DNA of 64,000 nt from Oikopleura dioica (GCA_907165135.1 OU015566.1:6076001-6140000); one strand, 5' to 3'. Positions 10,681 to 62,800 are shown, counted from the stretch's first letter. Notes: generated by a model not told the origin, from the letters alone. Made by a program: numbers and translations.

Positions 10681-10892
10681 AGCTTTTGAAATCTTTCCTT
10701 TCAATTATCTGACAACAATCCTGCATCAATAACTTTTTAATGCTTTCTAAGTTCAACTTGCTTTGCCCCCGATATTTTGCTTTCTGTATAATAAAATTTA
10801 TAACAAATATTTTATTCGATTTTTTATTGAAATAAATAGAAGCAAGGGATTTTATTTACAGAGAACACAATTTTACGGTAATTTTTTTCAAA

Positions 10893-15892: not shown

Positions 15893-15915
15893 GGGTTGAC
15901 GTTTATGCATTGGCC
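15893..15915 (-). promoter_or_regulatory. Conserved upstream element shared with gene C (38677-38699)
   Basis: 23 identical bases GGCCAATGCATAAACGTCAACCC in a gene-relative orientation, with similar flanks. Confidence 0.6.
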
Positions 15916-16732
15916 AAGTGGCAGCCTTGACTCGATGACTTAGATTTAGGAGTTCAAAGTTTTCAACTCTCATTAGAAAAGAGTGACTGTAGGATCGTTT
16001 GAGCGTCATTCCGCTCAAACCGTTATGAATTTAGTTTTTAAAAGGTATGAGCAGGGTATTTTTGGGGTATTTGCTGCTCAGTTTTAATAACTGAATGCAA
16101 TTAACGCCGGAAATAACGCAAAGAAGAAAAATGCTCGCTTCAATTCTTTTTCATTTCTCAACTCTTTTATTCGAGCATTGGCCAAACTAAGAGTCCTTGA
16201 TTTTTTCAAAACGCTGGATTCACTAACTGGTTAGTAAGAGGTTATTCGATTGAAGAACATCCTTCAAAGTGATTGTTGAGTGAAGAGCTAAAAATGCCCA
16301 GAAGTATTCCTTGAGTTGGATTCTACTGTATCATTTCATTTTAGAACAAAGTGTTTTGACTCAGGTTGTTGTGGGTATCAACGATCTTGGATGATTTGAT
16401 ATTAGATAAAGAGAACTCTAACACGACGTAACGGAAGTAGCAGGAATTTGGACATCCGCATTACGCGAGTCCCAAAATTTTGGAACATGAATTTTTAATT
16501 TTGGCCGAAATAGTTTTTCTGAAAAAGGGAAGTATTAGAGGTCATTTTTATAATATAGCTTGAAATAATCGCGGATTATTTTCGCGGCATAATTTTTTTT
16601 TTCTACTTTGAGGAATGAGAATGACGATATTTTATTTTTTGATTTTATTGATAAAAATTGTTAGCAGGGGATGTTATTTACAGAGAATTGAAAAAAAAAA
16701 ATTCTTGGACAGACCATAATTTATAAAATTTC

Positions 16733-19700
16733 TCAAACTTCATCAAAGAATTGATAGCTGAAATTTCTGATTTCGTAGTTGGTGGCTGGGTGCCATCGAC
16801 CAGCGTAGACGTGGATGTCGTCGTCTCGGAGGACGTCAGCGGAGGGCACTTGGCGAGTGTGTTTGGTTACTCCGTCAATGGTGAAAACAATGTCGGTGAG
16901 TGAAGAATCACCGGCGTTCTGTCGCTGGGAGAGTTTGTAGGTGTTCCAGTCGCCTTAAAGATATATTATCAAAGGATTATCTTTAGTATCTTCGCGATGG
17001 TTTAAATAAAATCTGACTTTTCTTACCTTCATTGCAATCGAACCAGAATCCGGTATCGCTGTTAACTCCAGTTGGATCAGCAACATTGATCAACAGTTTT
17101 CCTGGTCGACCAGTTGGAGCTTCCCAAATCATGAAAACTCGTTCTCCGAGGACTCCTCGAGCGGCGCCATTGGTGATTTCAACGATGCTGTTGTGCACGT
17201 TGTCGTTCATAGCTCCGCACTTGATGTCAACAGAGATTTCATTGTTGGCGTGAGCAGTGATTGTTGCTTTTCGGAGGTTCAGTTGTGGAGCAGCTGGGGT
17301 CGAACCGACGAATTCGAAGCAGTTTACTCGTCCGTCAGAGCAAGGAACAGCAGTTGGCTCCTCGTATGTAAGCTCGGGGAAAGTTTGGTAGAAGAAATTT
17401 CGGATTTGGAAAGCATTAGCTGGAAGACCTTTGGAAGCAAAGACCTTAATTGGAACATCCTTGAGGATCTCGCTGGTTTCGGCGCGGACAGAATGAACAT
17501 TGACTCCATCAATTTTGACCGTAGAAGTGGTCATGTGAGGAGCTTCACTGTCTTGGAATTGCTCGAGAGTGTAAGTGTTCCACTCGCCAGGAGTGCAATC
17601 CCAGAAGCGGCCGGTTTCACCCCACTGGTTGCCCATTGGAGAAGCGTAGTTGATGAGAATCTCTTGGCTCGTGTGTCTTCGCCAGAAGGAGAAGAATCGA
17701 TCTCCAAGGCTTCTTGTTCCGTCATCTTTAGTCATGTGGAGAATCTGGTAGTGAACGCCGGCAATAGGCATGTCATGTGTGCAGAGGATGTCGACTGATG
17801 TAATGTGATTGACGGAAGCAGTGACAGTTGCGATCTGGTTGTTTTCTGAGGGCGACATTGGAGCAGCATTAATGAAGGTCTCGCAGTTAGGTCTTGAGCG
17901 AACATAACCGTCGGCTGCGCATGGATCAGTCTGCATTTTCGGGTAAGTCTGATAGAAGAAGTTTCGGATGGCGTAGGCGGATCCAGCATCGTTCCATCTG
18001 TTCGACAAGTAGACATCAAGATCTGCCTCGGCGTAGACTTCGTGAGTGGCAACAGAGTTGGAGTAAACAACGACGTCATCGAGAGAAACAGAGAGATCAA
18101 CAATTGTTGGGTTGTCGGAATTCTGTTGTCGCTCGAATCGCCAAGTCTGCCACTCGCCAGGAACGCAATCAAACCAGCCGCTTTGGGCCCAGAATCCGTC
18201 GGTTGAAGGGTCAGCGACGGCCAATTGAAGCTTCTGATTGTCCTTGTGTCGGTTGAGCATGAAGAATCGTTGTCCGGGGTTTCCGTCGAGCTGCATCGAG
18301 GTCATCTGGAGGATATTCGTCCAATCGCCAAGTTCCATGTCGTGAGAGCATTGGACTTCGGCGCTGACGACGCTGTTGAATTCAGCTCTGACTGTAGCAA
18401 CTTTGTTTTTGTTTTCAGGTCGGATGTCACAGGAGTCGACAAAAGTGGTGCAGTCAGCCTGGCCTTCACAAGGATCGACAGCAACGCATGGCTCGTAGTC
18501 GACTTCGTCGAAGGTCTTGTAGAAGAAGTTTCGGACTTCGTAGTCAGCAGCAGCGTCGTTCCATTTATTCGAAGCGTAAACTCTGAGCTCATCTCCTTTT
18601 AAAACTCGGTGAGTGGCGACAACTCGTTCGGCGACAATGTCGTCGTTAACGCTGACGACGATGTTGGTCAGAGCTGGGTTGCTTTCGTCCTGTCTTTGCT
18701 CGAGTTTGTAAGTGTTCCATTCGCCTGGGACGCAGTCAAAATCACCGGCATTCGAAAAGTACTTGAAAGTTTCGGGGTTTGCAAAGCCAAGTGTGATCGC
18801 CTGAGAGTCTGGTCTGCGGTTGAGCATAAAGAATCGCTGGCCGGGGTTGCCATCAAGAGCCATGCTTGTCAGTTGAACAAAGTTCATGTAGGAGCTAAAT
18901 TCAACGTGAGTGCAGAGGACATCGACAGATGTGACGTGGTTGACGGAGGCGACGACGTTGGTGATTCGGTTGTTCTTGACGGGGTTGATGGCGCAGGAAT
19001 CGATGAAAGTCTCGCAGTTGTCTTCGCCGTGGCATGGATCGACACAAGTGATATCCTGGTGGTAGAAGTTTCGGACGACGTGATCGTAAGCAGCTGGCCA
19101 AGCGAATTCATTGGATGCTTCGACAAAGAGTGGTCCTTGGTAAGTATCAGTTTTTCGGACTTCCTGAGATTCGACGACAACTCCGTCCATCAAAATTTCG
19201 AGAAGCATATAATTCTTGCTGGACTCGGATTGTTGGACGGTGAATGTGTGCCAGCCGGGAGCGCAGGAAACGTAAGCGTTGAGTTCGTAAAGAGGGTTTT
19301 CAAAGGCAGGGGCGACGATTCTGATTCCATCGGGTTTGTTGGCTTCCTTCCAGATTGTGAAATATCGATCACCGAAGTTCTCTCGGTTGGTGCCAGTGTG
19401 GACGTGGAGAACGTTTTCCCAAGAAGGAGCAACTCGGTCAGTGCACTGAACTTCAGCGGAGATTTTGAATCCGAGATGTCCGTTCGATTCTCCAAGTCGG
19501 TTTCCTCTGAATGGAGCGACTCCGCAGCTGTCCTGGAAAGTCTCGCAGTTCTCGAGTCCTTCGCATGGATCAATAGCATCGCATGGCTCAGGTTCGTAGG
19601 GTTGCGATGAGTGGATAAAATTCTTGATCTTGAAGAAACTGGCGGGCTCGAACCAGCTGTTTCCAGACCAGACCTCAACTGGGCCGACAAAGGCGTCGGT

Positions 19701-21776
19701 GTGGTGGATAATGTTGGAGCCGAGAGCGTTTCCATCTTGGAAGACGGTGAGTTCGAGTCGGCCAAAATCAATCTGAGTTTGCTTGACAGCGATGTTAGTC
19801 CAGGAGTTATCTTCGCAGTCGACAAAGTATTCGACCTCGTCGAATTGAGTGTTGCCCTTGAGTGGAGCGTTGATTTTGAGTTTACCATCGTCTCGTTGCC
19901 AGATGGTGAAATATCTGTCTCCAAAGTTTTCTCTGTATCCACCTTGAGTCATGTGGACGACGCTCTGCCAGGAGTGGCCTTCAGTTCGGCGACAGAAGAC
20001 ATCAACGCTGGCGCTGTAGACAGCATTACCATCGACGGATCCGATTTGAGTGCTGTGCTGAGGTCGGATGCTGCAGCTGTCGACGAGAGTGTCGCAGTTG
20101 TCTCGTCCCTCGCATGGATCAACTGGGTCGCAAGGTTCAGCTTCGGGGAAAGTCTGGTGGTAGAAGTTTCTGACCTCGAAGCCAGTGGCAGAATCGTGGT
20201 AGTCGTTGGAGACATCGACAAAGAGATCACCGCTGAAGGCATCGGCTACGTCGACGATTCGAGTGACAAAGACTTCATCATCGATTGACATGGTGAGCTC
20301 GAGAGTGTCTTCAGCGTCGGTATATCGCTGCTCGACTTGGTATTTGTTCCACTCGCCAGGAGTGCAGCTCGGGTAGTGGTTGACCATGAAGTTTCCGCCG
20401 CCAGCTACGTTGCCGGAGTTTTTGAGTGGAGCGCTGAATTTCATCGTCTCAGGGCCAGCGAAAAGAGCAAAGTATCTGTCGCCAAGGACGTCCCATCTGC
20501 TGCCAGCGTTGATGTGGATGATGTTTTGCCAATCATCAGGAATCTCTCCGCATTTGACTTCAGCGGAGACCTTGAAAGCAGGCGAGCCTGTTGTAGTGGC
20601 AATATTGTTGTTTCTTGATGGAGTGATTCCGCAGCTATCGACGAAAGCTTCGCAGTTTTCTCTTCCGCTGCATGGATCAGCTGGTTCGCATTCGGGTGGA
20701 GGTGGAGGGCCAGGTTTGCATCTGCAAGACTGGGCAGAGTCGATGATCCACTGACCATCAACCCAGAGGTCAAGATCGGAAGTGATGAGTTCAGCGTCGA
20801 ACATCATTCCAGAAAGGAAGTTGCCGTCTTCCTTGAAGTTCATCTTCCAGTGGTGCTTGTTGCTTCCTGCAACTTCAACTGGTCCGTCCGGATGGATTGG
20901 ATGATTCCATTTCTGGAAGTAGACGGGCTCGGTGAACTTGATGCTGACGAAATCCTTCTTTGGGTTAAAAGTGAAGCCGCCGCCAGTGCCGTAGAAGGCT
21001 CTGATTCGGAAGCAGTTTCGGCAGGTCCATTCGTTTTCGAAGAAAATCTCCGAGTTTCCGAGACTACTGCAGACGGCATGCTGGTCTGCGTCACAGACGC
21101 CCGTCACTGGAGCCATAGTTGTTGGAGCCTCGGTCGGAGCTGGTTCCGTCGTCACTTCGGGCTTGTCGCATCGTCCAGCTCGGCGGGCGACCTTTTTCAG
21201 CTTATGGGATCGCTTGATCACCTTCTCCAAGAATTTTCGCTTCGGGAATCCTTCCACGCAGCCGAATTTTCGAGCGTAGCTTCGGATCATCGAGGGAACT
21301 CGTTCAGCGCCGGAGCAGAGATCTTCGATCGTGTCGATTTCGTCGGCGAATTTGTCTTCTTCGGCTGGAAGGGGACACTTGGAAGTGTCGATGTTGTTGA
21401 GATCCTGGAGGAGTCGGTTGACCCATCTGTCGACGTTGTCTTTTTGCTTCTGGGATGATTTGTCATAGGATTGGACGAAGGCATTGAGCTCAGTTGCTCG
21501 AGCTGTGATCTTCTCGAGTCGCCTTTCGGCACTATAATTTTCGATCAGATTTATAAATATTTTTTAAATAATTATTTCGATAAATAATTATTTATAAAAT
21601 AATTTTAGTAATTTTTTTCAATGAAGATTTTCGATAGAAATTTTAATAAAATAATCAATTTGATTCAAAAATTTGAAAATAATTTTATAAAAAATCATCT
21701 AAAAAAAGCTGATAAAGACTTACTCGGGCTCTCTGGCCGCCAAAGCCGAAGAAATGACAGCTGCCAACAGCTTCAT
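16733..21776 (-). CDS. Lectin-array gene B (~1592 aa): secreted, 7 LamG/ConA-like repeats
   Basis: Exons 21724-21776, 17027-21531 and 16733-16953 sum to 4779 nt. Ends YQFFDEV*, followed by an AATAAA signal. Confidence 0.9.
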
Positions 21777-21858
21777 TTCTATTTCTCTTTAGCTTTTAGC
21801 TTTTGAAGCGTGAGCTGGATTACAATTTACTTTTATTCTTTTCTGGGCCACACGGTGG
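21610..21858. repeat. Left copy of the ~249-bp direct duplication flanking gypsy element 2 (contains gene B exon 1)
   Basis: Matches 28681-28930 except for one A in a homopolymer. Confidence 0.95.
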
Positions 21859-22125
21859 TGACACGACTGTAGAAAAACTTTACATTTTGTAAATATCTTA
21901 TATATGAATTTTACGCCTATTGCAGCAACCTTTCTTATTCTTTTATCTACGCGCTGACCTGATTCCAATCGAGGGAGTGACGACCCGCTGATTCGAATCA
22001 TTGACCAACTGACCCACTTTACCCAGCTGATTTTACGCTTGACACAGTTCTGACCCTTTATAAGCGACTCTGCCAAGACAAAATTATTCAATTTCACAAT
22101 AAAACCAATCGAAAGGTTCAATTTT
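21859..22125 (+). repeat. 5' LTR(-derived) repeat of element 2
   Basis: Starts TGACAC; contains TTTATAAG and AATAAA; repeated at 28420-28686. Confidence 0.9.
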
Positions 22126-28419: not shown

Positions 28420-28686
28420 TGACACGACTGTAGAAAAACTTTACATTTTGTAAATATCTTATATATGAATTTTACGCCTATTGCAGCAACCTTTCTTATT
28501 CTTTTATCTACGCGCTGACCTGATTCCAATCGAGGGAGTGACGACCCGCTGATTCGAATCATTGACCAACTGACCCACTTTACCCAGCTGATTTTACGCT
28601 TGACACAGTTCTGACCCTTTATAAGCGACTCTGCCAAGACAAAATTATTCAATTTCACAATAAAACCAATCGAAAGGTTCAATTTT
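28420..28686 (+). repeat. 3' LTR(-derived) repeat of element 2
   Basis: Copy of 21859-22125; no polypurine tract immediately upstream. Confidence 0.9.
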
Positions 28687-28930
28687 TTTCAATGAAGATT
28701 TTCGATAGAAATTTTAATAAAATAATCAATTTGATTCAAAAATTTGAAAATAATTTTATAAAAAATCATCTAAAAAAAAGCTGATAAAGACTTACTCGGG
28801 CTCTCTGGCCGCCAAAGCCGAAGAAATGACAGCTGCCAACAGCTTCATTTCTATTTCTCTTTAGCTTTTAGCTTTTGAAGCGTGAGCTGGATTACAATTT
28901 ACTTTTATTCTTTTCTGGGCCACACGGTGG
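28681..28930. repeat. Right copy of the flanking duplication; contains a second gene B exon 1 (28796-28848, minus strand) still attached to the native upstream promoter
   Basis: Direct match to 21610-21858. Confidence 0.95.
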
Positions 28931-35640: not shown

Positions 35641-35807
35641 CTGCGCTTTGCAACCTGTGTATAAAACCTGAGTCAGGATTTGAATATCTTAAATGAAAAG
35701 CTAAGCGGCTTCGCACGTAGATAAAAAAAGACTGTAATAGTAATATCGCGAAGCCGTAAGATCTTCAAATCCTGACTCAGGTTTAATACACAGGTTGCCG
35801 AGTCAAG
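35641..35807. mobile_element. Intergenic copy of the CTGGGCTCGGCAACC MITE family
   Basis: Inverted arms GCAACCTGTGTAT.AAACCTGAGTCAGGATTTGAA; TSD not recognisable. Confidence 0.75.
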
Positions 35808-39615: not shown

Positions 39616-39666
39616 GTTTATGGCCCTTGCTCAAATCATACTCAGCCAAAGAGAAAAAACGAAGAA

Positions 39667-42600
39667 ATGAAGCTGTTGTCAGCAGTCATTTCTTCAGCTT
39701 TAGCTGCCAGAGAGCCAGAGTAAGTATTTTTGCGAATTTTATTTTTTATTTTTTTTTGCAATTTTTTTACCAATTTATAGTTTTTTTGGGAAAATTTCAT
39801 CCCCTATTCTGTTTATTCATAAATCTGATCGAAAATTCTAGTGCCGAAAGGCGACTCGAGAAGATCACAGCTCGAGCAACTGAGCTCAATGCATTCGTCC
39901 AGTCCTACGACAAATCATCCCAGAAGCAAAAAGACTCCGTTGACAAATGGGTGACCCGACTCCTCGCCGACCTCAACAACATCGACACGTCCAAATGCCC
40001 CCTTCCAGCGGAAGAAGATCGATACAACGACGAAATCGACACGATCGAAGATCTCTGCTCCGGCGCTGAACGAGTTCCCTCGATGATTCGAAGCTACGCT
40101 AGAAGATTCGGCTGCGTGGAAGGATTCCCAAAGCGAAAATTCTTGGAGAAGGTGATCAAGCGATCCCATAAGCTGAAAAAGGTCGCCCTCCGAGCTGGAC
40201 GATGCAACAAGCCCGCTCCGACCACCGAACCAACTCCAACCGAGGAGCCATCAACTCTCGCCCCAGTGACTGGCGTCTGTGACGCGGACCAACACGCTGT
40301 CTGCAGCAGTCTCGGAAACTCGGAGATTTTCTTCGAAAACGAATGGACTTGCCGAAACTGCTTCCGAATCAGAGCCTACTACGGAACTGGCGGTGGCTTC
40401 ACGTTCAACCCAAGAAAGGATTTCGTCAGCATCAAGTTCACCGAGCCAGTCTACTTCCAGAAATGGAACCATCCAATCCATCCGGACGGACCAGTTGAAG
40501 TTGCAGGAAGCAACAAGCACCACTGGAAGATGAACTTCAAGGAAGACGGCAACTTCCTTTCTGGAATGATGTTCGACGCTGAACTCATCACTTCCGATCT
40601 TGACCTCTGGGTTGATGGCCAGTGGATCATCGACTCTGCCCAGTCCTGCAGATGCAAAGACGGCCCTCCACCACCACCCGAATGCGTTCCAGCTGATCCA
40701 TGCAGCGGACGAGAAAACTGCGAAGCCTTCGTCGATAGCTGCGGAATCACTCCATCCAGAAACAACAATATTGCCACAACTACTGGTTCGCCAGCTTTCA
40801 AGGTTTCCGCTGAAGTCAAATGCGGAGAGATTCCTGATGATTGGCAAAACATCATCCACATCAACGCTGGCAGCAGATGGGACGTCCTTGGCGACAGATA
40901 CTTTGCTCTTTTCGCTGGCCCTGAGACGATGAAATTCAGCGCTCCACTCAAAAACTCTGGAAACGTCCCCGGCGGCGGAAACTTCATGGTCAACCACTAC
41001 CCGAGCTGCACTCCTGGCGAGTGGAACAAATACCAAGTCGAGCAGCGATATACCGACGCTGAAGACACTCTCGAGCTCACCATGTCGATCGATGATGAAG
41101 TCTTTGTCACTCGAATTGTCGACGTAGCTGATGCTTACAGCGGTGATCTCTTTGTCGATGTCTCCAACGACTATCACGATTCTGCGACTGGCTTTGAAGT
41201 CAGAAACTTCTACCACCAGACCTTCCCTGAAGCTGAACCTTGCGACCCAGTTGACCCATGCGAGGGACGAGACAACTGCGATACTCTTGTAGATAGCTGC
41301 AGCATCCGACCTCAGCACAGCACTCAAATCGGATCAGTCGAAGGAAACGCTGTCTACAGCGCTAGCGTTGATGTTTTCTGCCGCCGAACTGAAGGTCACT
41401 CCTGGCAGAGCGTCGTCCACATGACTCAAGGTGGATACAGAGAGAACTTCGGAGACAGATACTTCACTATCTGGCAACGAGATGATGGAAAGCTCAAAAT
41501 CAACGCTCCTCTCAAGGGCAACACTCAATTCGACGAGGTCGAATACTTTGTCGACTGCGAAGATAACTCCTGGACTAACATCGCTGTCAAGCAAACTCAG
41601 ATCGATTTTGGCCGACTCGAACTCACCGTCTTCCAAGATGAAAACGCTCTCGGCTCCAACATCATCCACCACACTGATGCCTTCGTCGGCCCAGTTGAGG
41701 TCTGGTCCGGAAACAGCTGGTTCGAACCTGCCAGTTTCTTCAAGATCAAGAACTTTGTCCACTCATCCCGACCCTATGAACCTGAGCCATGCGATGCAAC
41801 TGATCCATGCGAAGGTCTTGAAAGCTGCGAGACCTTCCAGGACAGCTGCGGAGTCGCTCCATTCAGAGGAAACCGACTTGCCGAGTCTAACGGACATCTC
41901 GGATTCAAAATCTCCGCTGAGGTTCAGTGCACTGACCGAGTTGCTCCTTCCTGGGAAAACGTTCTCCACGTTCACACTGGCACCAACCGAGAGAACTTCG
42001 GTGATCGGTACTTCACAATCTGGAAGGAAGCCAACAAACCCGACGGAATCAGAATCGTCGCTCCGGCCTTTGAAAACCCTCTTTACGAACTCAACGCTTA
42101 CGTTTCCTGCTCTCCCGGCTGGCATACGTTCACCGTCCAACAATCTGAGTCCAGCAAGAACTACATGCTCCTCGAAATTTTGATGGACGGAGTTGTTGTC
42201 GAATCTCAGGAAGTCCGAAAAACTGATACATACCAGGGCCCACTCTTTGTCGAAGCATCCAATGAATTTGCTTGGCCGGCTGCCTATGATCACGTCGTCC
42301 GAAACTTCTACCACCAGGACATCACCTGCTACGATCCATGTGAGGGCAAAGATAACTGCGAGACCTTCATCGATTCTTGTGCCATCAACCCCGTTCGAAA
42401 CAACCGCCTCACTAACATCGTCGCTTCCGTCAACCACGTCACATCTGTCGATGTCCTCTGCACTTACGTCGAGTCCAGCAGCTACATGAACTTTGTGCAG
42501 ATTACAAACGAGTCCATGGACGGAAACCCAGGAAACCGATTCTTCGTTGTCAACCGACGACCTGACTCTCAAGGAATCACAGTCACCTTCAACAACCCCG

Positions 42601-45092
42601 ATGCGTCCAGATACATGTCCGGAACAACTCCCTTCGAATGTGTCCCCGGCGAATGGTACACCTTCCAACTCGAACAAAGACAAGACGAAGCCAACCCAGC
42701 TGTCACCAACATGGTTGTCACCATCAACGGCGACGTTGTCAAGGAAGTCTCCACTGCCACCAGCGGAGTTATCAATGGCGGCGAATTCAAAGTCATGGCT
42801 TCGAACAAGTGGAACAGCGCTGCTGAGGACTACTCAATCCGAAATTTCTACTACCAGACCTTTGAAGAAGTTCCTTATTGCTTTGATCCATGCGACGGAG
42901 AAGATGGCAACTGCCAGACTCTTGTCGACTCTTGCGAAATCAATCCATCCCAAAACAACCAGCTCGATTCAATCACCGCTTCTGTGAATTTCGACTTGTC
43001 TTTCGATCTTCTCTGCTCAAACAACATGGCGCACGGAGAATGGACCAACATCCTCTGGATCGTACGAGCCAGGGATAACCAACGAATGATGGGTCTCTTC
43101 AAGAACAGTGATGATCACCGACTCCGCCTGAATACTGCTAACCCAGAAGTCACCGGCACCGCCAATCCCTTTTTGTCTAAAGGATGGAGTGAATGTACCG
43201 ATGGAGAATGGTCAACTATTCGATATCACCAACAACAGAACGCTGCTAATCCAGCTGTCACTGACGTCACTGTAACCAACAACGACGAAGTTGTTATTTC
43301 AGCTAGCTTTGCCACTGGACTCGTGACCAAGGATGAGGAACTCGAAGTCTTCGTCTCCAACCATTTCAACCCATCTGGTTCTGACTACGCTATCCGAAAC
43401 TTTGTCTACAAGACTTCTGAAGAAAATCTCGGCTCTGATCCATGTGATGGCAAAGCCAACTGCGTCACTTTGATCAATTCTTACGCCCAAACCCCGGCGA
43501 AGAACAACCAGATCGGCTCAATCACCGCTGCAATCAACTTTGAAGTTGCTGCTAACGTCCTCTGCACCGACGAAATGGATGTTGATGAGTGGTACAATCT
43601 CATCCACATGACCATAGGCGGCAATAATGGTGAACTCGGTGATCGATTTTTCAAGATCTCGCAGAAGAGAGGTTCTCATGAGCTGATGATCAACATGGCC
43701 AGCCCCGAAGAGGATAACGGAACTCGAGGTACTTTCCACATTTGCACACCAGGTGAATGGAACGAATACAAGCTCGTCCAGGCGCAAAATCCTGACTGGC
43801 CATCGCACACCTACTCGACCGTTTATGTCGACGGAGTTGAGATCTTCCAGATTCGATCTGACACCCACGAAGTCCTTAATGGAGATAATATCGACGTCTT
43901 CTTCTCTGATAACTGGCATCAGTCCGCTGACGCTTATCACGTCCAGAACTTCTACTACCAGACCTTTGCTGATATCGACTATGGAATCATCCCGTTGAAA
44001 GACTGCCGAGAAGAAACTCTCTGCGAAATCGTCGGTGATGACTCTCAAGCCGCCATCAAGGACTACCATGTTGCCACTGTGACAGCTGCAGTCAACTTCG
44101 GAATCTCCGTTGATGTCCTTTGTGAGGCAATGCCTGTTGGCAACTGGTACAATCTCATCCACATGACTATGGACGGTAACAATGCTGTTCTTGGCGACCG
44201 ATTTTTCCTCGTCTCCCAGCACACTTCAACTGAAGAACTCCTCATCGACGTTGCTGATCCAAACCAGCCAAACGGAAGCTCCGGCCGACGCGCCGCATGC
44301 CCAGCTGGCGAGTGGATAACCATCGAAGTCGATCAGTCTCAGGACGCATCTGACCCAAGTGTCACTACTTTCACAGTCAACGTCGATGGCGTCGAGATTT
44401 ACTCTCGATCGGCTGCTACAGAAGCTGTTCTTGCAAGCGGAGAAGTCCAGGTCTACGTTTCTGACCCATGGCACCGAGCTGCTAGCTCCTACCAGATCAA
44501 GAGATTCGTCTACGAGCGATTCGCTGATGTCCCCCTCGGTCCCCAGAACTGCAACGACGTCGACAACTGCGTCATCGTCGGTGCTGATTCCGTCTCTCCC
44601 GTCCAGGGCAATCTTGCCGCCACAATCACCGCTGTCAAGAACTACAAATTCTCGATCGACATCAAGTGCGACCACTCTCTCCCCTTCGACGGCTTCAAAA
44701 ACATCTTCCACGTAACCACTGGCCCCAACGACGGCGTCTACGGTTCTCGCCAGTTTGCCATCTGGAGATCGAGCAACGAGAACAAAATGCACATCACTAC
44801 CGCTAATCCAAAGGCAGCAGGTGGTCACTCGAGAAATTACTTCAACTGCATCGACGGAGAATGGAACACCTACACTTTCGAGCAGCACCAACAGGCTCCC
44901 AACCGACGCCAATGGATCTGGTTTAAACTCTCCATCGACGGAGTCAGACAATACTCCAAACGATTCAACGACGACGACTATCCAGTCCTCGACGGCGAGC
45001 AGATGAACGTCTGGATTTCCAACGAAGCTGCCGACGCTGCTTCCACCTTTGAAATCAGAAACTTTTCTTACGAAAAATACCCAGATCTTTAA
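39667..45092 (+). CDS. Lectin-array gene C (~1767 aa): secreted, 8 LamG/ConA-like repeats
   Basis: Exons 39667-39719 and 39842-45092 sum to 5304 nt. Same 53-bp exon 1 as genes A and B. Confidence 0.93.
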
Positions 45093-46479
45093 ATCGAAAA
45101 AACTCCTTATGAAATTATTTCAAATTTTGCTACTCCTTCTGTAAATAACAACCCATTCTTCTCTATCTATCTTTATTAATAAAAAAATCAAAAAAACATC
45201 GGTCTTCTATCTTTAGCAGGGTAAAAAGCATTCAGTCATTCCGCATTGTCGTAAAAAGAATAAAATTTGCAAAAAGCTTGTTTTTAAACCAAACGGACAT
45301 TGTTTTACGTGACAATTTTGATGACAAACCTACCGAGTGGTATAAACATTAATTTTGCAATCGAGCCCGTTGGAAGATCTAAAAAGCTATTTTGATTAAA
45401 TCATCTTATCCAGCCAGTTGCTAAAAACTGACATTTTGACCCACGTCATCATAAAAAGAAAGAAAACGCGACATAACCTCTAGTAGAGGTCCTCTACAGA
45501 ACTAGGCGGGGTTTATGAAAGGTTCAGAATTTGCACTGTCACTCGGGAAGCCAAGTCAAGTGCCCCCACTTAATATGCGTTCTCCCAGCCTAGTTTTCTT
45601 AAAATATTCGACTTGCAAAAAGACACTGGTCATTTTAAGTGCACGCCCTCCAAAGTTTACAAATTGACATACTTGTTGCTTTCAAGAAAATGAACAATTT
45701 ACACGTCAGAATTTTAAGTTTTCAATTATCTCCAAAGATGCGGACTGTCCTCGTTTAAGGAGACCCCCCCCCCGTCAGCTTTTTCTTCGAAAAATAAAAT
45801 TTTTTTAAAACACCATATTTTTGGTTCTTCATGCGTCCTCAGGTTAAATTTGCTTCAAAAACTTGATAAGAAGAATTTTTGACCAAGAAAAATCAATATT
45901 CTCGCCAAAATTAGGGAAATTCGTCAATTTTCGGCAAAAAGTCCAATTTTCAAATGCGATTTTAAAATTGCGATATTTGATTTTTCGAAATAGCTGATCT
46001 TAATTTCTTTGAGCAGTCTTTTTTGCCTTTTGTTTTATGATTTATAATTTTTATTAATCTCAATAAGCACCAGTTTATTATCACGTCCAGAAGCAAAAAT
46101 GAACCTGACTGGCCTTTTTTGTAGGAAGAATACAAAAGATAGAAAACGACCTTTTGGGGCAGATTAGAGAAGAAGTTCAGCTGTTCCGAAACTGTCAGGC
46201 CTAGCCAATTGAACCCGGCCTATTCCCAACAGCGATAGAGCAGGAGTGAAGATGAACGAAGATTCTTTTATTTTTCTCGAGTAGCGAAATTTTATTGCAT
46301 TGTTTTTTTAAATCCCCTGACTTGAGAAATAATTATGGGCTCTCATTATCGGAACATTGACGCCTCTCTTCGGTACTCTTCTTTAGAGAAAGGAATCGGC
46401 TAGACGTTCATTATTCTTATTTGACACTGTCTAAGATAGTCTGCATGATCTATTTTCTTAAATATTTTGGCCGATTCTA

Positions 46480-49400
46480 ACCCTGGAAAAAGAGGACATA
46501 ATGAAGGAGACAGAGGACGACCCGGAATATGACTAGGGTGAATTTACAAAAAAATCAACTTTTTCCCTATGAATGCTGTCTCGTTGAAACTTGGCATGGT
46601 GAAAGATCATGCCCGAGTTTCTTCACAAAATTTTTTCTTTTAAATTTTTTTCGTTTTTCAACCCTTTTCGCCCCCATAAAAGGCTATCTTTTGAGCGCCT
46701 CAAGTGTCGGTGCTCTTTTTGGCCGGAATCGAAGCGCGGTCGGCTTCTGATCATCTTCCGAAAAAAATTTAGTGAAGCTATCACCGATGACTCAGAATCG
46801 GCATTTTAGTGTTACGTAACACTGTTATGTAACATAACTACTAAATGACAATAAGTCCTCCACTAGAATAATTGATGGTAATTTGGTGAAATTTTGGGAC
46901 GGTAGGTATTGGCCCCAACTAAAAAAATTGTAATTGAAAATTTTTTGGTCTGACCACGTGATCACGCGATACTGGCGATTCTTCTTAAAAGGAAGACTCG
47001 ATTTAAAATATAAATTATTAAAAAATAAGAATGCTATTTATGGCAATATTTTTGGCCCCGTTCCTTGGTTTTTTAATTTAAGGGGCTTGACGGCCCTTCG
47101 GGCCGTCTCAGCCCCGTTCCTTGGTTTTAATTTAAGGGCTTGACGGCCCTTCGGGCCGTCTCAGCCCCGTTCCTTGGTTTTAATTTAAGGGCTTGACGGC
47201 CCTTCGGGCCGTCTCAGCCCCGTTCCTTGGTTTTTAATTTAAGGGGCTTGACGGCCCTTCGGGCCGTCTCAGCCCCGTTCCTTGGTTTTAATTTAAGGGC
47301 TTGACGGCCCTTCGGGCCGTCTCAGCCCCGTTCCTTGGTTTTAATTTAAGGGCTTGACGGCCCTTCGGGCCGTCTCAGCCCCGTTCCTTGGTTTTAATTT
47401 AAGGGGCTTGACGGCCCTTCGGGCCGTCTCAGCCCCGTTCCTTGGTTTTTAATTTAAGGGGCTTGACGGCCCTTCGGGCCGTCTCAGCCCCGTTCCTTGG
47501 TTTTAATTTAAGGGGCTTGACGGCCCTTCGGGCCGTCTCAGCCCCGTTCCTTGGTTTTAATTTAAGGGCTTGACGGCCCTTCGGGCCGTCTCAGCCCCGT
47601 TCCTTGGTTTTAATTTAAGGGGCTTGACGGCCCTTCGGGCCGTCTCAGCCCCGTTCCTTGGTTTTAATTTAAGGGGCTTGACGGCCCTTCGGGCCGTCTC
47701 AGCCCCGTTCCTTGGTTTTAATTTAAGGGCTTGACGGCCCTTCGGGCCGTCTCAGCCCCGTTCCTTGGTTTTAATTTAAGGGGCTTGACGGCCCTTCGGG
47801 CCGTCTCAGCCCCGTTCCTTGGTTTTAATTTAAGGGCTTGACGGCCCTTCGGGCCGTCTCAGCCCCGTTCCTTGGTTTTTTAATTTAAGGGGCTTGACGG
47901 CCCTTCGGGCCGTCTCAGCCCCGTTCCTTGGTTTTTTAATTTAAGGGGCTTGACGGCCCTTCGGGCCGTCTCAGCCCCGTTCCTTGGTTTTTTAATTTAA
48001 GGGGCTTGACGGCCCTTCGGGCCGTCTCAGCCCCGTTCCTTGGTTTTTTAATTTAAGGGGCTTGACGGCCCTTCGGGCCGTCTCAGCCCCGTTCCTTGGT
48101 TTTTTAATTTAAGGGGCTTGACGGCCCTTCGGGCCGTCTCAGCCCCGTTCCTTGGTTTTTTAATTTAAGGGGCTTGACAAAGGCCTGGAAATCTGAGTTG
48201 ATCAGTCTCAGTTTCGTCCCCAACCCCTCCCACCTCCATCCAATGTAAAAATTTATATTTTTCATTTTTAAAGTCTAGTTATGGTTTTTATTGATAATTA
48301 AAAAAAACTTCTCTAACGAGAATTTACTTAGAATTTTATGAATCCAAAATAAAAATTGAAAAAAAATTAATATTCGGGCTCCGGAGCCAAAAAACCGAAA
48401 AAAATTGGAAAAAAATCGGTTTTTCGGAGGCTCCACCCTTAAAATTTTTATTAATTATATTTTTACGGGGAAGCTTTGGACCAGCCCTTTTTATGATCTA
48501 TTACAATGCAAAGAATTATTTGTCTTCCACCAAGTTATTTTCTTCCACCGGCTTTAAAAAAGGTCCTCCGGGTCATTCCTGATCGATCTGAAAGAGCTTC
48601 ACTAAATTTTTTTATTTCAAAATGATCAGTTTTTTCAGGCGCTTCGAATGAGCCTAGTCACGTTCTCGTAACTTGAGGCGCTCAAAAGTTGAGTTTTTCG
48701 GCTATTTTAGAGGGCGCTAGAAGAAAATCACGTGACATATTTAAAGAAAAACTCTTCGATATGAGATTCATATGCATGGGAAAAATTGCATACAAAATTT
48801 GAAAGCCGTACGACCCCTAGATTAAAAGTTGATTTTTGTAAATTCACCCTAAATATGACCTCACGCAAATTTATACAGAACTTTATAGGTGATCTCCGAA
48901 CATGATTGAATTTATCGATAGTTTTATTCAGCAAAGTTGGGCAAGGAAAAATCGCCGACATCAGCTTTACTGACGAGTTTTCTGAGCTTTCTTACCAGAC
49001 GAATATCGACAAATATTTAGACTTAGCAACGGATCAAAAATTAAAGATAATTTTTTCAAAAGCCTTTCCATCTTTTCGATCCAAAATTCAGTGCTTCTCG
49101 TACACTGCCAAAAACTCTACCACCTAGACGAGATCTTAGAAAAGAAGCGCGCAAGTGAACTCGCTATCCGAGCTGAGCTTAAGGCGCTTTTGCCGCCGAA
49201 AATCGCCAAATTTGTCGTTCCAACTTTGGAGGTCAAGCAAGTGCTTCTCAACCCCGTCAAGTTTATCAACAATCTCGAGGACGAGTACAAGGATTTTCGC
49301 GAAACAAATAAAGGTGTGGAGGAAGAAGACTCGTTGGAGTATCTTTTCAGAGCTATTCTAGGAAAGCGGCTTTCCTACAGCGATTGAAGAACAACTCATT

Positions 49401-52400
49401 AGTAGTTATCAACAAAAAGAAAGCCAATAAAAGCGTCGTTAATTTTACGAATGAATGGCGTTTACTTGAAAAACTACAGTTTCCACAATGCAGCTCGATT
49501 CTGCAAAGAACTGGCAATGAACAGACTGGAGGGCTTTGCCATTCAAGTCTTTCAAGGGATGAAGGCAAAAGGCTTCGAATATTTGACCTCGATCGTCGAC
49601 AAAGAAGGATATCGCCGCGTACCGTTGATCCGAATCGCCCAGCGAGCTGGTCTTTTTGAATTGCTCTCCCAAGATCTTGTGCAGCGTCAGCTCGATATTA
49701 TCTATGCTGGTGGATTAAAGAAGAGCTCTTCAAATTTCTTCAGCCAGTCGACAATAGGTATCTAATGCCAGCCAATTTATTCCCAAATGTGCGTTCTTTC
49801 AGTTTATATCCTTGGATTGGCGACGATGGGACTTTTTCCAGCAATTTTCTGCCCCGATTTCATCAAATTTGACAAAACAAAGTACTTTCTCAGGAACTAG
49901 GGTGGGCCAATTTACTAATCATAAGAGGCAAAATTGGAATTCGCTTGCCAATCAAAAGTCGATTCTGGTTGATCTTGGGGCAAGGGGTTCTTCGGCCAAT
50001 AAGAGTCCAGTATTTGCTCGATGAGCCAATAAATGAATATCTCTTTATAGTTTTGCCCACCCTAGGTCAGAAAGTTCTGGCGGGACATTTTCGGACCAGG
50101 CTATGTAACATTCGAAGGCGGTTCGCTCAAAAGATTCAACATTTCAACAACCTCCATGACCAAAACTACTTCAAAACACCGGCCGATTCAAAAGCAGTTC
50201 TCAATTTCCGAAGAGTCAAACACTTCTTCCAGCCCCGACGATTGCATCATCGTCTCCAAGGGCGAAAAAGTCAACCATTCCTTTTCCGACAAATTCCGCG
50301 ACTTCCTCTACCGCTGGCTCACCTGGAACTTTTCGACAAAAGTGATCATGCTCAACAACCTGATCACCGACTGCATCATTCTCTTCTTTCTCATGTACCT
50401 TGCCGTGGCGAAGCTCAGCTATCACTCGAACCAGTGGGACTTTGTTTTCATCGCGATCTTCGGTTGTCGGATTTTCCACCGGTTGCGGACTTGGTTTGCC
50501 AGAAAAATCTTCTTCGACTCTGAACACGCTTGGACAGTGCCAATTCGAATCGGTTTCGTCGAAAAAGTCAACATCTTCGCGATCTTGATTTCCATCCTTT
50601 TCATAACTACGAGATGGGAATTTGTCAATCAAACGCCTCGCTACGTTATGGGCCCCCTTCTTCAAGACGACGCGAGTTTTTACATTGGAAACTACACGAA
50701 AGACATTGAAACATTCCAAGCTGGGCTCGGCAAATTGACTAGAGAGCCTAGGTCAGGGTCTGAAAGAGCTAAAATGAAAAGCCGCGCAGCTTTGCTAATA
50801 TAATCATTGAAATCTATCAAAAATTCTGGCGAAGCGGCTTTTCTCATTTTAGTCTTTCAGACCCTGACTCAGGTTTTCTACTCAGGTTGCTAAGCCCAGA
50901 TTCCAAGGCTCCAATCAAAAGGCGGTTCGAGAAAAATCCGACTTTGTCATGGAGTTTTACAACGATTTTAAAAACAACGATACAAGATCGTTCAACTACT
51001 ACGAAAAACTGTACGATGGAATCAAATACATGCCCTTCCGTAGCCCTCAGAATTTCAACAACGCGATCAACAACTACTTTTTCGTCCTGCCGCCTTTTAT
51101 GGTCGGTTCTTTGTACAAAACTCCGCTTGGAAATTCGACTGTTGAAGATAGAGAGTGCAGGGGCAACATCACTCACAGAATGAGAAATAACAAAGAAGAC
51201 AAGGAAGAAGACTACCACTTTGCAGAGTGCTGCGAAAACAGGAATGTTAGCTGAAATTATTCACCAAGAAGTGTCTTTTTTTTGCCTAGCATTTTCAAGA
51301 TCGATTCGGACTCTTACCGACGGTCAAACGGTCAAAGATCAAGGAACGAATGTTGTCATCAAGCTGCTGAAATCATCAGAGAACGCTACAGTTCCAATCT
51401 GCTACTTTAGCAGAGTCAAGAATATTTCATATCTTTCATTTGTCTGGAACGTTGTTTTTCTAAATGAAATGCACTTCATAATGTTGCTCGAAAACAACCT
51501 CCGAAAGCATCAACATTATGATTTTCTTTTCAATTTTCAACTTGCTTCGATTCGCCCGTTTGTCCGTCTTTATCGGTCCTCTGATTTATGCTCTTTACAG
51601 GACTCTTTTCGACGTCCTCAAATTTGTGCCGATTTTTTTGCTCTTATTCCTCGCCTATGGAATCATTCAAAACAACCTTCTTTTTCCCAATCAACAGGTA
51701 ATTCTTCTCTAAATACAATGTTATAAGATGGCCATTTTTAGACAGAACGGGATGATGTTGCTTCTTGGGTTTTCACAGAATTTACGAATATCTTTAACCG
51801 GCCGTTTTTCCATGTTTTTGGAGAAATTTTCATCGCAGAAACAACTACTCATCGATACTACCACATCGAGGTCAGTTTTTTTCTTCGAAAATAATGCTAG
51901 AATTAAACCAAGGCGCCCTGCACGCATGCTTTCGGAGACATAAACTTGGAAGACAAAGTCCGCTGCCCAGAACGTAATGAAATTTCATCCTTTATCATGT
52001 CGGCCTATATGCTGGCTACGAATATTGTGATGGTGAATATGCTCATCGCCATGTTCAACGAAACGTATTTGAAGATGAAAAACGTAAGGACCAAAGGATT
52101 TCTTTTTAGAGCTTCTTTAGAACTCGAAATTGATCTGGGCGACAGACAGATACAAGTTCATTTTGGAAGAGTATCATTATTTCCCAAATATTTTTATTGG
52201 AGGAATTTTTCAATTTATCTTGTGCATCTGGTTCCTCATTTGCTTATTGATCCGATTCCCCGGTAAGTTTTTCAGAAGAAATTTTTCGTAATAAATTCAG
52301 TTTGGTTGGTCGTGAAAATAAAACGAAGAAAGGAAAATGCCAAGTCTCAAACAATTTTGTTTGACCAGCGCCTCGTCGGGCGAATTCTCCCAAGAAGGCC

Positions 52401-54168: not shown

Positions 54169-54988
54169 TTTTCCGATTTTTTCAATTAATGATATTTTCA
54201 GCAGATTTCAGCCGATTATATATGGGCGCGCATCTGCGTTTTCCTCCATACTGGCTCCACCTCTTTATGGGAATGCAAATTTAAATTTCGAAATATCATT
54301 GACATCGAAGAATGATACCGTATCAAATACTTTACGGCTTGGCAACCTCTGAAAAAAACCTGTGTCTGATTCAAAAAAGCTGACTTTAGAACCTAACTCA
54401 GACTTTCCACAGAGTTTCCTGTGCGCAGAGTAAGGATATCCGCCAAAAACATTGTCTAAATTGGTTCTATGAGGATAGAGTTTTATGAAAAATCAGCAAT
54501 TGCAATAAAATGCAACAAAAGTGCCAGAAAAGATCTGTTTAAAATCCCGTGTTACCCGCGTATGAGCCTCAAGGATCTCAAAATTTATGACACCGACAGG
54601 ATGGCTGTTTGCCTTCCTTATTGAAATTTTGAAAAGCTCATAAAGATGATAGAAAGTGCAAATGCCGCGCACGAATCTTGGCATCAATTTCGCCAAACAT
54701 GAAGTATGTTTTTTCGAGTTTCCAAGACCTCGCCCATAAGAGTCAATATTATCAATTCTTACCAAATGAACATTTGTAAAGGAAGGACACGTGTGGCGTC
54801 TTCATTGAAGACTCTTCAATACTGCATAATAACGTATAATATGATCATCTTATGGGAAAATTCCAACAGAAAAACCGAACTTTTACTCTTTGTTCTTCTT
54901 GTTGTGTCTTAAATACTGTGTGTCCATCTTATTTCAGCCAAGTCTCCTTATCAAGTGACTTTGAACTTGAGGTCATTTTGACTATTAA

Positions 54989-58503: not shown

Positions 58504-60558
58504 ATGATTTCGCAAATAAATCGGATACAAGCGATATGGGGACTGATTCTCTTCATTTTGTAAGCGCCTCTTTAAGTTACTAATTGATTCATAATGGCGA
58601 TTCTAGTCTTGTTCTGGCTGTTGTTCTTCCAACGACGCTGATCCCCCGACAAAAAGATAAACTCCAGTGCGAAAATAGCGAGAATGGAAAAGCCCGGGCA
58701 GTTTCTTTGGACAAAAGGCCATTGGGGGACGCAATCAGTTACTGCTCTGATTGCGAAGGGTTCAACTCTTATATATGTGGGGGGAGACTTCCCGAGGTAA
58801 TCTTGGGATAAAAGTAGGGACTATAAAAGATTACTAGATCGAATCGGATGAGTACTGGAATGGGTGCGTCAATAATGCAACTCCAGCAGGTAGAACAAAA
58901 TCAGATTGCAGCGACGTTGATGAACTCAAGTACTTCATTTGCGAGTATGATTTCAACTGTGACGAATGGAAGCTTCTGTTCAAGTAAGATCGAGATAAGC
59001 ATACAGGTGAACGAGTCTAAAATATCAACGTTAAGTTTCAACGAGACAACAAGTACAACATCCTCTACTCCCACAATAACCTCAGTCGAAGGCTTGCCGG
59101 AGTGGATTGAGCCTTCTTTTGACTAGCTAGCTCATACTTTTACGTCTCTGATCTGAAAGCTAGAAAAGAGAGGATAATTGATTCCTGTAAGCCTTCTCCT
59201 CCGCATCTTCTTCAACCACTAGCTCAACTACAACGACGACAACAAAGTCAACTACGATGACAACAACGACGACGACTACATCAACGACAACAACAATAAC
59301 GACAACTCCAGCGACGACAACGACAGCGTCGACAACACCAACAACAACAACAACGACTACTACTTCTACTACAACTACCACAGCAAGTACCACAACAACA
59401 ACTACAACTACTTCTTCTACAACTACGACTACAGACAAAAGACAACCGGTAAAATTCTTCTTGCTTACTTCGATCGACTTCACTATTACAATAATCATAA
59501 AATTTGAACTTAGAGCGGCGTCAATATTATGCTTCTCGCCCCGACTTTAACGCAATCACACGTCATTTCTGGCGATGGACTGAAGAAATCAACTCCAGTC
59601 ATCAGTGCGCCATCTGAAAACTACGCTCAAAATAGCATTTTTGCCGTTGTTAAGGGAGTATTTTTCATTTTCGGAGGAGAATCTGATGATAAAAAGGTCA
59701 TTTTTGTGAAAATATTAAATTATCGAAGACAATTATTAAAGATAGCAAGACTAAGTGGGTGTAGCCTGGTTGACACTGGCTTGAAAACAGGAGGAAGATA
59801 TAATTCTGGATCGACTTCTTCCGCAATCGAAATCAATAACGGGGAGCAAGGTTTAAATTCGATCATTTCATTGTTCCAATATTTTAAGCTTTACTTTGCT
59901 TCGATGTTGAATCTTCAAAAGACTGCGAAATTTTTGATACAACCAGTATCGCATCGACACATTCAACCCAGTTCACGCATCAGAGAGGATCTCTTGGCTA
60001 CTACCTCGGCCAGCCAACGACTGTAGGAAGCGTTCAAAGTGACGGACAGAACAAAGTCGAAACCTTCTCAGCTACAGGGTGGACGAGCTTGCCTGATAGC
60101 CCGAGGTAGACTACAAAATAATTCAGTCGTTATTCTGCTATAGAAATACTCACAACAACTGTTTGGTTGGCTTAGAAAGTGGAGCGATGCTAATGCTCGG
60201 CGGCTATCGTTACGATGGTTTTAAAACTCTCGTTCGAGGTATTTGGCGATTGAAAGAAGGAAGTTGGTCGAAAGTAGGAAGCCTTCCAGAAGTAAGACGA
60301 TAAATTTAGAAAAAGACTTTATCATCATTAATTAAGCGTTCTTCTCGAGTCTCCTTCATGAAATTTGGCAATTTCATCTACCTCTTTAATGGCGCCGGGA
60401 CTGCTTCAAACAATAAATATCCTGAGCAGCGAGTAGAAATCCTCGACGACGAAGTTGTTGCAACTGAAGTTATCGGCCACCACACTTTCTCTTCTAGTTT
60501 TCCCGTGCTCGTTGAAGTCTCTGCTGACTTCTGTGCCCCCGAAAGTGTATTCTTTTAA
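58504..60558 (+). CDS. Membrane-anchored protein: C-type-lectin-like domain, Thr-rich mucin stalk and Kelch-like beta-propeller region
   Basis: N-terminal hydrophobic segment; ...AISYC...GGRLP..., KYFICEY; poly-Thr at 59220-59430; Kelch-like motifs FFIFGG, MLMLGGY, WSKVGSL, IYLFNG. Confidence 0.7.
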
Positions 60559-60684
60559 TTTTCATGCTAAAGCTACTCTGACTTCTCCTGACTTGCATAA
60601 AAACGATTAAAAACTTTCAAAAATAAATAATATGTCACTGATTTTCGTTGTCAGGATTGATTGAATTTCTTTCAGAAGGATCGG

Positions 60685-62800
60685 TTAAATTTTCGGTTTT
60701 ATCATTTTTTCTTGACTTTCTTCTTCTTCATTGTTGTCGCCATTGCTTGTCAGGCAGCAGTAAGATTTGAGTTTGATGAGCGAGAGAGGCGGCAAATTGG
60801 AGAAAATACCGGTGGAAATAAGAGTTGATGCAGCGATGATTCCAAGAGTAAAATACATGATGAAGAATTCACTTTTGAGCATGCACTCTGCTCTGAAAGG
60901 ATGAACAATCATCTGGTAGCTTCTGAAGTCGGATTCATGTAGCTTTTCTTCGAAGCAATTTCCTTCAATTTTGACTCGGTCTTTCAAAATCTGGAAAAAT
61001 ATTGAAACGTCGAATTTAATATTCTCTTACTGATAAGGAGCTGTCATCCACCCGTGCGCAAATGCTGTTGTTTATTTTGTTTTCCTGGTTGACTTGATCG
61101 ATGCAGAAGTCGATGATTAAATCGTTGAGAGAAATCATCAACGCGCATAAAACTTAAAAATAAAAAGTGGTTTTGACAAATTTCTTACTTAATGACAATT
61201 GAGTGATACCAAGCAAGATAGTCAATATTCCCTGAGCTACTGGGGCGCAAAAATATTCGGCTGCCTTTTGCTCAATAATTTTTTGATTTTCGGCGAAGTC
61301 GATGTTTTCCTTCACGCAGCCGGTCTTCAACAAAATGTTCAGTACCAGCATCATCATTTTGATAATCGTGGGTAGGTAGGTAATGAATGAGCAAAGGGGA
61401 GATATACAGGAGATGTATAGGTAGATTTCGATACAGGACCTGGGTTCGGCAACCTGTATAGAAAACCTGAGTCAGGGTTTTAAAAAGACGCGAGAATTTT
61501 GATTTTCAGACCCTGACTCAGGTAATCCAAAAGGTTGACGAGCCCATCACAGGACTTCCATGAACTAGAGTAACTCAGCTAGATTCTGAATTGATATTGC
61601 GAAAAAACTTACCAAGAAATCTTGAAAAGTAAAAATAAACAAGCATTACTTCGAAGGCCTTGAGAAAAAAGCTATCAAGAATTTTATGCTCGACAATTAA
61701 TTTGAATATTTTCGTCAACATCCTTCTCTCTCCGCTTCTCTCCGTTCTCATGAGCAGGAAAATCGTTATCATATGGCTAAGAAGCTTCAACGAGGCACAA
61801 ATTATCAGCGAAATCGAGACCCAATGAACAGGGTCAACTGCGAGGGTGGAACCAGTGTTGTACTCGTACCAGACAAAAACTGGGGGAAGAATTTCGATTA
61901 TTGGAATTAGCGCAAAAATCAAAGATGAAAATATGGACAGCTTTCCGTTGAATTTTGAGTTGACGATGACAAATGCCAAACTACAAGAAATAGTCGCGAT
62001 GAGAAAACACTGTTGAGTCCAAAAGTAAAAGGTTGTGTCGGGATCATATGGAATCATTTTGATTAGATTCAGTCTGTATCGCATTCTTTCCTCGGTCTCC
62101 TTTGCAAAAGATTTCTTGTCAAATATCGTTTTTGTAACTAGCCGTACAGTGAGCATGACAATGTTCATTTCTTGCTCATCAGAAATACTCTCTTCGGATG
62201 ATTCTCTCCGTTTCATGATTCGTCCATTTTCTCGTCCGAAGTAGCTTCTGCAGTTTCCATCAATTACTTCCCTATCACTTTGACCGTTACCATAAAAATC
62301 ACATATATTCGCCGCTTCATCATCAGTCACATTTATTTGCGCCGTTGTTTGGGAAGACGAATCCATGAACAAAAGTTCATCCCCGATTCCAAATTTGAAC
62401 TTCAGTATTGACTTCAATTCTTCTTCAAACTTTCAATCGGATATATATTTTAGAATAAAAATTCGAATTTACCCAACTGACTTCAATTTCTTCAGCTTGC
62501 CAGACAGTCTGAAATCGTGAAAGAACTCTGTTCATTCTCTCTGCTCTTGAGTCCGCTTGGAATGACCGAGCTAGAAGCAACAAAAGTAAAAATCGCATGA
62601 CTTCACTTGATTCTCTAAAAATGAGAATGACAGCTGACGAAACTCCAATTTGTTGAAGGTGTGTAGGCCGGTTACTCTACTGCCCTGATTTTCAAAAGCT
62701 GCAGCCGGAAATTCAGCGTTTCGATGACAATTGAAGTCTTGTTTGAATGATAACAACTTAATTATTCGGAACAAACCGAGTTGAAAGAGACCGATGAACA
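60685..62800 (-). CDS. Multi-pass membrane protein of unknown family (multi-exon, 5' end uncertain)
   Basis: ORFs 62571-62801, 61575-62417, 61154-61357 and 60685-60987 contain several hydrophobic segments and can be joined through short introns. Confidence 0.55.
61440..61547. mobile_element. Short copy of the CTGGGCTCGGCAACC MITE family
   Basis: Arms CTGGGTTCGGCAACC / GGTTGACGAGCCCAT; TSD TACAGGAC (61432-61439) / CACAGGAC (61548-61555), 7/8 match. Confidence 0.82.

Follow-up and report, generated by a model that had tools for sequence, protein, structure and literature searches.

The question raised by this locus is whether a MITE lying within a protein-coding gene of Oikopleura dioica is removed from the transcript as a newly gained spliceosomal intron, one splice site being taken from its target-site duplication (TSD) and the other from the end of the element itself. 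Oikopleura is a classic animal case of massive intron turnover, and the source of its many new introns is at issue. The window analysed here is a stretch of 64,000 nucleotides (OU015566.1, 6076001-6140000); positions are counted from its first letter, and the gene is read from the minus strand. The original prediction held that the upstream TSD copy supplies the GT and the element end the AG of an exact 116-bp intron, while allowing that the element might instead have landed at the boundary of an existing one. Introner-type intron gain is the most likely reading of the locus, with both the splicing and the sites used predicted from the genomic sequence; that the spliceosome does take the MITE out as a gained intron, at least in the haplotype of the type found in the DNA run X27, is judged fairly probable. 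The features discussed below are collected in Table 1.

Table 1. Features of the host gene and of the inserted element, from 5' to 3' along the minus strand
Feature	Position	Strand	Basis
Putative exon 1, inferred, with a signal-peptide-like start	62473..62598	minus	tblastx conservation with L004
Exon 2, protein ending ...VYFYFSRFL	61613..62429	minus	protein alignment
Conserved phase-1 intron, 48 nt, GTAAGT...CTCTAG	61565..61612	minus	same codon in L002-L006
9-nt micro-exon TTCATGGAA, V-H-G codons with flanking bases	61556..61564	minus	VHG/VNG in all orthologues
Upstream TSD copy, GTCCTGTG on the minus strand	61548..61555	minus	direct repeat at 116-nt spacing
MITE body, 108 bp	61440..61547	minus	repeat finder, blastn, motif count
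Downstream TSD copy, GTCCTGTA, exonic, coding for part of S-P-V	61432..61439	minus	orthologue comparison
Exon 3 remainder, in frame after the 11-nt insertion as ISPLCSFITYLPTIIKMMM...	61189..61439	minus	alignment to P0026, P0024
Derived 11-nt gain within exon 3, 24 nt past the MITE acceptor	61405..61415	minus	comparison with X27 and Okinawa
Exon 4	61031..61152	minus	alignment-based gene model
Exon 5, closing with a stop codon	60685..60990	minus	alignment-based gene model

The element and the ends of the candidate intron

The element belongs to a multi-copy family: the window has 11 occurrences of its core motif, where 1.0 would be expected. Using blastn, five family copies have been identified there, at approximately 7867-7997, 35641-35802, 50721-50899, 54333-54440 and 61440-61547. 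In the DNA runs, word depth summed over 61438-61511 reaches about 1e5, the flanks having about 50, and several hundred family contigs from two such runs lose similarity exactly at 61440. The copy at 50721-50899 has a perfect 8-bp TSD (ATTCCAAG) and the termini CTGGG...CCCAG, which fixes both the family ends and the TSD length; taken together with the break in similarity at 61440, these ends identify AG as the element's true last dinucleotide.

Two of the five window copies of the family sit within long ORFs. The copy at 50721-50899 (region 50713-50907) lies in a plus-strand ORF, where the removal of 187 nt gives a continuous DIETFQ-GSNQKAVREKSDFVMEFYN; no GT-AG pair restores that frame exactly, and only AT-AG or CT-AG boundaries fit. 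A truncated copy at 7867-8010 adjoins GGTTAGGGTTAGGGTTA, a short interstitial telomere-like (TTAGGG) repeat. Other repeats of the window include long tandem arrays at 47059-48214, with periods of 53-56 nt, 14 and at least 6 copies and up to 98% identity between some of them; exact direct repeats of 267 bp and 158 bp at 21701-22125 and 28420-28930; and a multi-exon gene region, rich in repeats, that forms a large inverted duplication (10883-21559 against 39654-45102, with arms of, for example, 2806 nt at 92%) and also has direct copies about 6.4 kb apart.

The copy at 61440-61547 has inverted ends of about 45 nt that have decayed; the repeat finder reports arms at 61441-61455/61532-61546 that are 87% complementary and at 61465-61485/61503-61523 that are 90% complementary. 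Its plus-strand termini are CTGGG...CCCAT, where the family consensus ends ...CCCAG, so that on the minus strand the element, read from 61547 to 61440, terminates in ...GAACCCAG. A direct repeat, ACAGGAC, is found at 61433-39 and 61549-55 with a spacing of exactly 116 nt, and the full TSD is 8 bp long with one mismatch (TACAGGAC/CACAGGAC on the plus strand). The candidate donor GT, at 61555-61554, is formed by the first two bases of the upstream TSD copy, within which a further GT lies at 61550-61549, and the candidate acceptor AG, at 61441-61440, by the last two bases of the MITE; one TSD copy plus the element thus makes up a 116-nt GT...AG unit, just as had been predicted. The placing of the TSD mismatch on the would-be intronic side is likewise borne out, since the closest relative, L002, reads GTCCTGTA, the form of the exonic copy. 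As a GT is expected to open a random TSD in about 1/16 of insertions, the geometry of this single copy is not improbable in itself. The 116-nt RNA folds as one long hairpin of -50.1 kcal/mol, against a mean of -24.2 for shuffled sequences (z = -8.2). The exon flank at 61426-61437 (TTTCGATACAGG) is 92% complementary to the segment 61453-61464 of a MITE arm.

The host gene and its uninterrupted orthologues

The gene that carries the element encodes an uncharacterised multi-pass membrane protein which, in HMMER searches, belongs to a small family; no Pfam family matches the protein or its relatives. In the Okinawa O. dioica assembly (OKI2018_I69) the corresponding gene is g4331 of chr2, whose protein (P0019, with isoform P0026) is 85% identical over exon 2. 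A second useful relative is P0024, a 410-aa protein from a JGI metagenome contig, which aligns colinearly with the Okinawa protein through the exon boundaries; in the region of interest the two have ...YFYFSRFL-VHGSPVSN(S/A)TYIS(L/I)LC... in common. Searches of protein collections found no annotated or transcript-derived protein from the window's own lineage.

Exon 2 of the window ends in ...TTTCTTG, encoding ...LVYFYFSRFL plus one base, so that the intron which follows is of phase 1. Removing that 48-nt intron leads into V-H-G, and removing 61555-61440 as well leads on into S-P-V-S-K-S-T-Y. Judged by these alignments, the true frame over the junction is VHG|SPVSKSTY. It had originally been proposed that splicing out the 116 bp restores SWKSCIEIYLYISC exactly, which proves wrong on the upstream side, where the frame assumed meets a stop 7 codons before its W and runs across the conserved intron. 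The upstream frame SWKSCIEIY is ruled out by that same stop and intron; it is the frame of the downstream exons, a mismatch which the 11-nt insertion in exon 3 explains.

The site of the insertion was compared in L004 (the Okinawa gene) and in the metagenome contigs L003, L005 and L006, from other Oikopleura lineages, and it is an uninterrupted coding exon in all four. The conserved phase-1 intron lies at the same codon in each of these and in L002. Colinearity between L004 and the window extends along the entire gene; at the site L004 reads ...TTTTAG|TTCATGGCA-GTCCGGTT-TCCAAC..., without any element; in the blastn comparison with it, the alignment jumps from 61549 to 61405 of the window over only 16 nt of L004. 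After the conserved intron the exon reads VNGTPVSDATYV in L003, VHGSPVSNATYV in L005, where the empty site is GTCCTGTC, and VHGTPVSDSTYL in L006. The contig of L002, a Tara contig with 94% amino-acid identity to the window, stops exactly at the insertion point (...GGAAGTCCTGTAT), and its last base fits an empty site, which amounts to one base of evidence. Excision of the 116 nt of TSD and element from the window recreates the conserved peptide VHGSPVS(K/N)STY.

By this comparison of orthologues, the MITE is a lineage-specific, exonic insertion that splits the codons of a conserved peptide. The genomic alignments establish that it has been inserted, that it lies in an exon, that the orthologues lack it and that its removal brings back the ancestral codons. 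The earlier caveat is thereby disposed of, and the intron-less orthologous locus that had been proposed as a check was found four times over. Insertion of the MITE into an intron that was already there, or beside its boundary, without any part in intron gain, is a reading invited by the conserved intron, which ends only 9 nt upstream; with VHG-SPVS continuous and free of any intron at that point in four element-free lineages, it is extremely improbable.

A contig from the DNA run X26 is identical to the window over 61280-61475, including the MITE junction, and two contigs from X27 (61229-61489 and 61460-61669) bridge both ends of the MITE at about 92-96% identity. With the site empty in the Okinawa lineage and filled in X27, the insertion is placed after the split from Okinawa and before that between the window and X27 haplotypes, which differ by about 5-10% in the region of the MITE. 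At 60550-60913, X26 itself contains two haplotypes, one identical to the window (depth about 35) and one of the X27 variant (depth about 16); haplotypes about 9% apart coexist within this one run or population.

Reading frame and splice signals in two haplotypes

The 11 nt at 61405-61415 are present in the X26 contig and absent from the X27 contig, from Okinawa and from all other lineages, which makes their insertion the derived state. By eye, they look like an inexact tandem duplicate of the 11-mer beside them (8/11 matches). The motif ATACAGGA, from the exon flank next to the MITE, recurs at 61404-11, inside or beside them. Removal of exactly 116 nt from the window haplotype would give ...VHGSPVSKSTYTSPVYLPFAHSLPTYPRLSK and a stop at 61356-61354, and about 250 codons downstream of the 11 nt remain open there in another frame; with the 11 nt deleted, as in X27, the same splice would give an ORF of 539 codons that is colinear with the Okinawa protein and P0024 and has no gap at the junction. 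The 11 extra nucleotides therefore put the exact GT-AG splice out of frame in the window haplotype, and the exact-splice model, on these conceptual translations, would work in the X27 haplotype and not in the window, for which it had been put forward.

Three shorter introns would keep the window in frame. One, of 97 nt, is the canonical GT61550-AG61454, whose pyrimidine tract is better; the others are GT61539-AG61440 (100 nt) and GA61548-AG61440 (109 nt). The last has non-canonical GA-AG boundaries; non-canonical introns make up about 11-12% of those of O. dioica (PMC8008620). Each of these alternatives is predicted to swap SKSTY for a longer hydrophobic stretch. By frame arithmetic, no single canonical intron running from 61612 to any AG is in frame with the downstream exons. 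The window allele would be either a null or reliant on other in-frame sites inside the TSD or TIR.

The splice signals themselves are weak. The candidate donor, GTCCTG, bears little resemblance to the GTAAG at which all four conserved introns of this gene begin; the pyrimidine tract of the candidate acceptor is poor, and the site is base-paired within the -50 kcal/mol hairpin; and the exact splice would require the recognition of a 9-nt micro-exon. An exon of that size is hard to define, and the old donor at 61612, GTAAGT, is far better than GTCCTG at 61555, which lends some weight to a reading in which the old intron is simply extended, its donor being joined to the MITE's AG at 61440 in a 173-nt splice that skips the micro-exon and turns VHG into G. 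The 173 nt differ by 9 nt from the 48 + 116 nt of two separate introns, and both arrangements would be in frame in the X27 haplotype. VHG or VNG is nevertheless kept in every orthologue, the window preserves the old acceptor, CTCTAG at 61565, and the 173-nt splice is likewise out of frame in the window haplotype; such an extension is regarded as quite unlikely.

The same weak signals and strong hairpin, together with the frameshift that follows exact splicing in the window, bear on a further possibility, which is that the MITE is kept in the transcript or uselessly removed from a recently disabled allele, a null or pseudogene whose downstream frame is open only for want of time to decay. Transcripts of the gene from this lineage were not found in the RNA runs and protein collections searched. 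Only 15 partial reads on the gene, all below 90% identity, came from the RNA runs X4 and X5, and probably these derive from another cryptic lineage or the gene was not expressed in those runs; the host gene is in none of the indexed RNA runs, and no sampled word of it occurs in the older RNA contig sets. Exons 4-5 of the window and X27 differ in 12 non-synonymous and 5 synonymous codons among the differences listed (7/33 and 8/13 for the two contigs), which makes the 12:5 ratio only a hint in the direction of disablement. The corresponding counts for exon 2 against L002 are 10 non-synonymous and 26 synonymous codons (Fisher p = 0.006 between the two sets). Exons 4-5 are also less conserved between the MITE-free lineages, and the ratio could reflect either relaxed constraint downstream of the element or just a less constrained C-terminus.

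Several observations stand against a disabled allele. The insertion is common to two haplotypes that are about 5-10% apart, and in both of them the frame is intact apart from the 11 nt. Just one further indel seen between the window and X27 is exonic, an in-frame one of 3 nt (GTC); other small indels, of 1-4 nt, lie in intron or UTR. Exons 3-5 have no excess divergence from the outgroup, with a similarity to P0024 of about 0.41 in the window against 0.40 in Okinawa, a comparison of low power. Exon 2 is strongly constrained (dS 0.31 and omega 0.088 against L002), and several canonical GT-AG alternatives are available in frame. The open downstream codons, the in-frame indels and the retained similarity to P0024 are counted as support for continued function, and a disabled allele is considered unlikely, though it deserves to be kept in mind.

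Under the preferred reading, that of a gained intron, a non-autonomous DNA transposon (a hAT-like MITE with an 8-bp TSD) would have entered a conserved appendicularian membrane-protein gene in its coding exon 3, where 9 nt separate the target site from the end of an older phase-1 intron, after the Okinawa lineage had branched off but before the X27 haplotype did. The family end, ...CCCAG, and a target site that happened to begin with GT would together have created the 116-nt GT...AG unit, the removal of which gives back the ancestral coding sequence, and the transcript would have survived through the spliceosomal removal of the element. The later 11-nt insertion in the window haplotype would then have left the exact splice with a truncated product. 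The proposed correspondence with the introner mechanism holds for the exonic insertion, the origin of the candidate GT and AG in TSD and TIR and the restored ancestral codons; it fails for the window's own frame, which is broken after the exact splice.

Recurrent insertions and known transposon-derived introns

The host gene has taken up other MITEs in other lineages. The last coding exon of the Okinawa gene holds an unrelated one of 364 bp at 5189-5552 of L004 (within the region 5170-5560), with 51-nt arms that are 92% complementary, the TIR CAGGGCTGCTGAATTCGG... and a perfect 8-bp TSD (ATCATGGC); no interruption exists there in the window. Isoform P0026, as annotated, is reproduced only when 5170-5544 is removed from L004, as a 375-nt GT...AG intron that covers most of the element, running from a cryptic exonic GT 19 nt upstream of it to an AG 8 nt inside the far TIR and replacing SEFFIMY by TALIMA. 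According to the gene model, this is an imprecise intronisation of a MITE; the Okinawa models were built with RNA-seq hints (PMC8008620). A third, different MITE is found in L003, from another Oikopleura species (an ENA metagenome contig), at 1168-1534 in the region 1160-1542, with the TIR CAGGGGTGAGGG and the 8-bp TSD GTGTTGAC; it is placed exactly at the acceptor and start of exon 4, the first G of its TSD being the G of the old AG. Three independent exonic MITEs in one gene in three lineages suggest, from their positions in these sequences, that such insertions are common and often survivable, and their recurrence, including an annotated intron that removes a MITE, suggests a process frequent enough for population-level study.

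A broader version of the introner reading can be put forward tentatively, and is perhaps rather doubtful as it stands: that O. dioica lineages carry abundant MITE families with 8-bp TSDs and ...CCCAG ends that act as true introners and are a major, ongoing source of lineage-specific introns. Insertions into exons would be tolerated because the element end would in each case give the acceptor, and the TSD or a nearby cryptic site the donor. The three independent MITEs in coding exons of this one gene, in the window, Okinawa and L003 lineages, speak for this version; on that view, the 11 nt gained in the window might compensate for a shifted splice site by restoring its frame.

In its 8-bp TSD and short TIRs, the window family resembles MITEs of the hAT superfamily. 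Its first bases are CTGGG rather than CAGGG or TAGGG; they are close to, though not identical with, the CAGGG that opens the Okinawa and L003 MITEs, as it does Ac-type hAT ends.

The closest parallels in mechanism are the introners of Micromonas and Aureococcus (Huff et al. 2016, as reviewed in PMC11282704; surveys in PMC9860276 and PMC12130899). In the accounts these sources give, introners are short, non-autonomous, multi-copy DNA transposons with TIRs and a TSD, in which element and TSD contribute one splice site each, and excision of the element with one TSD copy brings back the original coding sequence; the candidate intron of the window is likewise made up of an element plus one TSD copy. 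The window MITE is a member of a multi-copy family, it has TIRs and a TSD at the intron boundaries, and its position is intron-less in relatives, all of which are marks of an introner. It differs from the Micromonas example, where the element carries the donor and the TSD provides the AG (PMC11282704), in having the arrangement reversed, with the donor in the TSD and the acceptor in the element; its TSD is also of 8 bp rather than the 3 bp of the Micromonas and Aureococcus introners, and splicing at the window locus is predicted from sequence. Among tunicates, introners have been validated in Styela clava (PMC12130899).

Within the appendicularians there are two precedents. Intron gains by transposon insertion have been credited to Oikopleura dioica itself (Denoeud 2010, as cited in PMC3296678 and PMC3443670), and, as those citations present them, they share with the present case both the species complex and the proposed mechanism, that of a transposon in an exon which is then spliced. 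In Fritillaria borealis, MITE-derived non-canonical introns have been described (Henriet et al. 2019, as summarised in PMC11282704); according to that summary, these too are lineage-specific introns carrying TIRs and TSDs, though they mostly have AG-AC or AG-AT boundaries and need an altered spliceosome. The window candidate, with GT and AG at its ends, has no such Fritillaria-type boundaries. What the locus adds to these systems is a dated before-and-after example, empty in four relatives and filled in two haplotypes, with boundaries at a TSD and a TIR end; it is a well-bracketed new and probable case of transposon-derived intron gain, of a kind that is already known.
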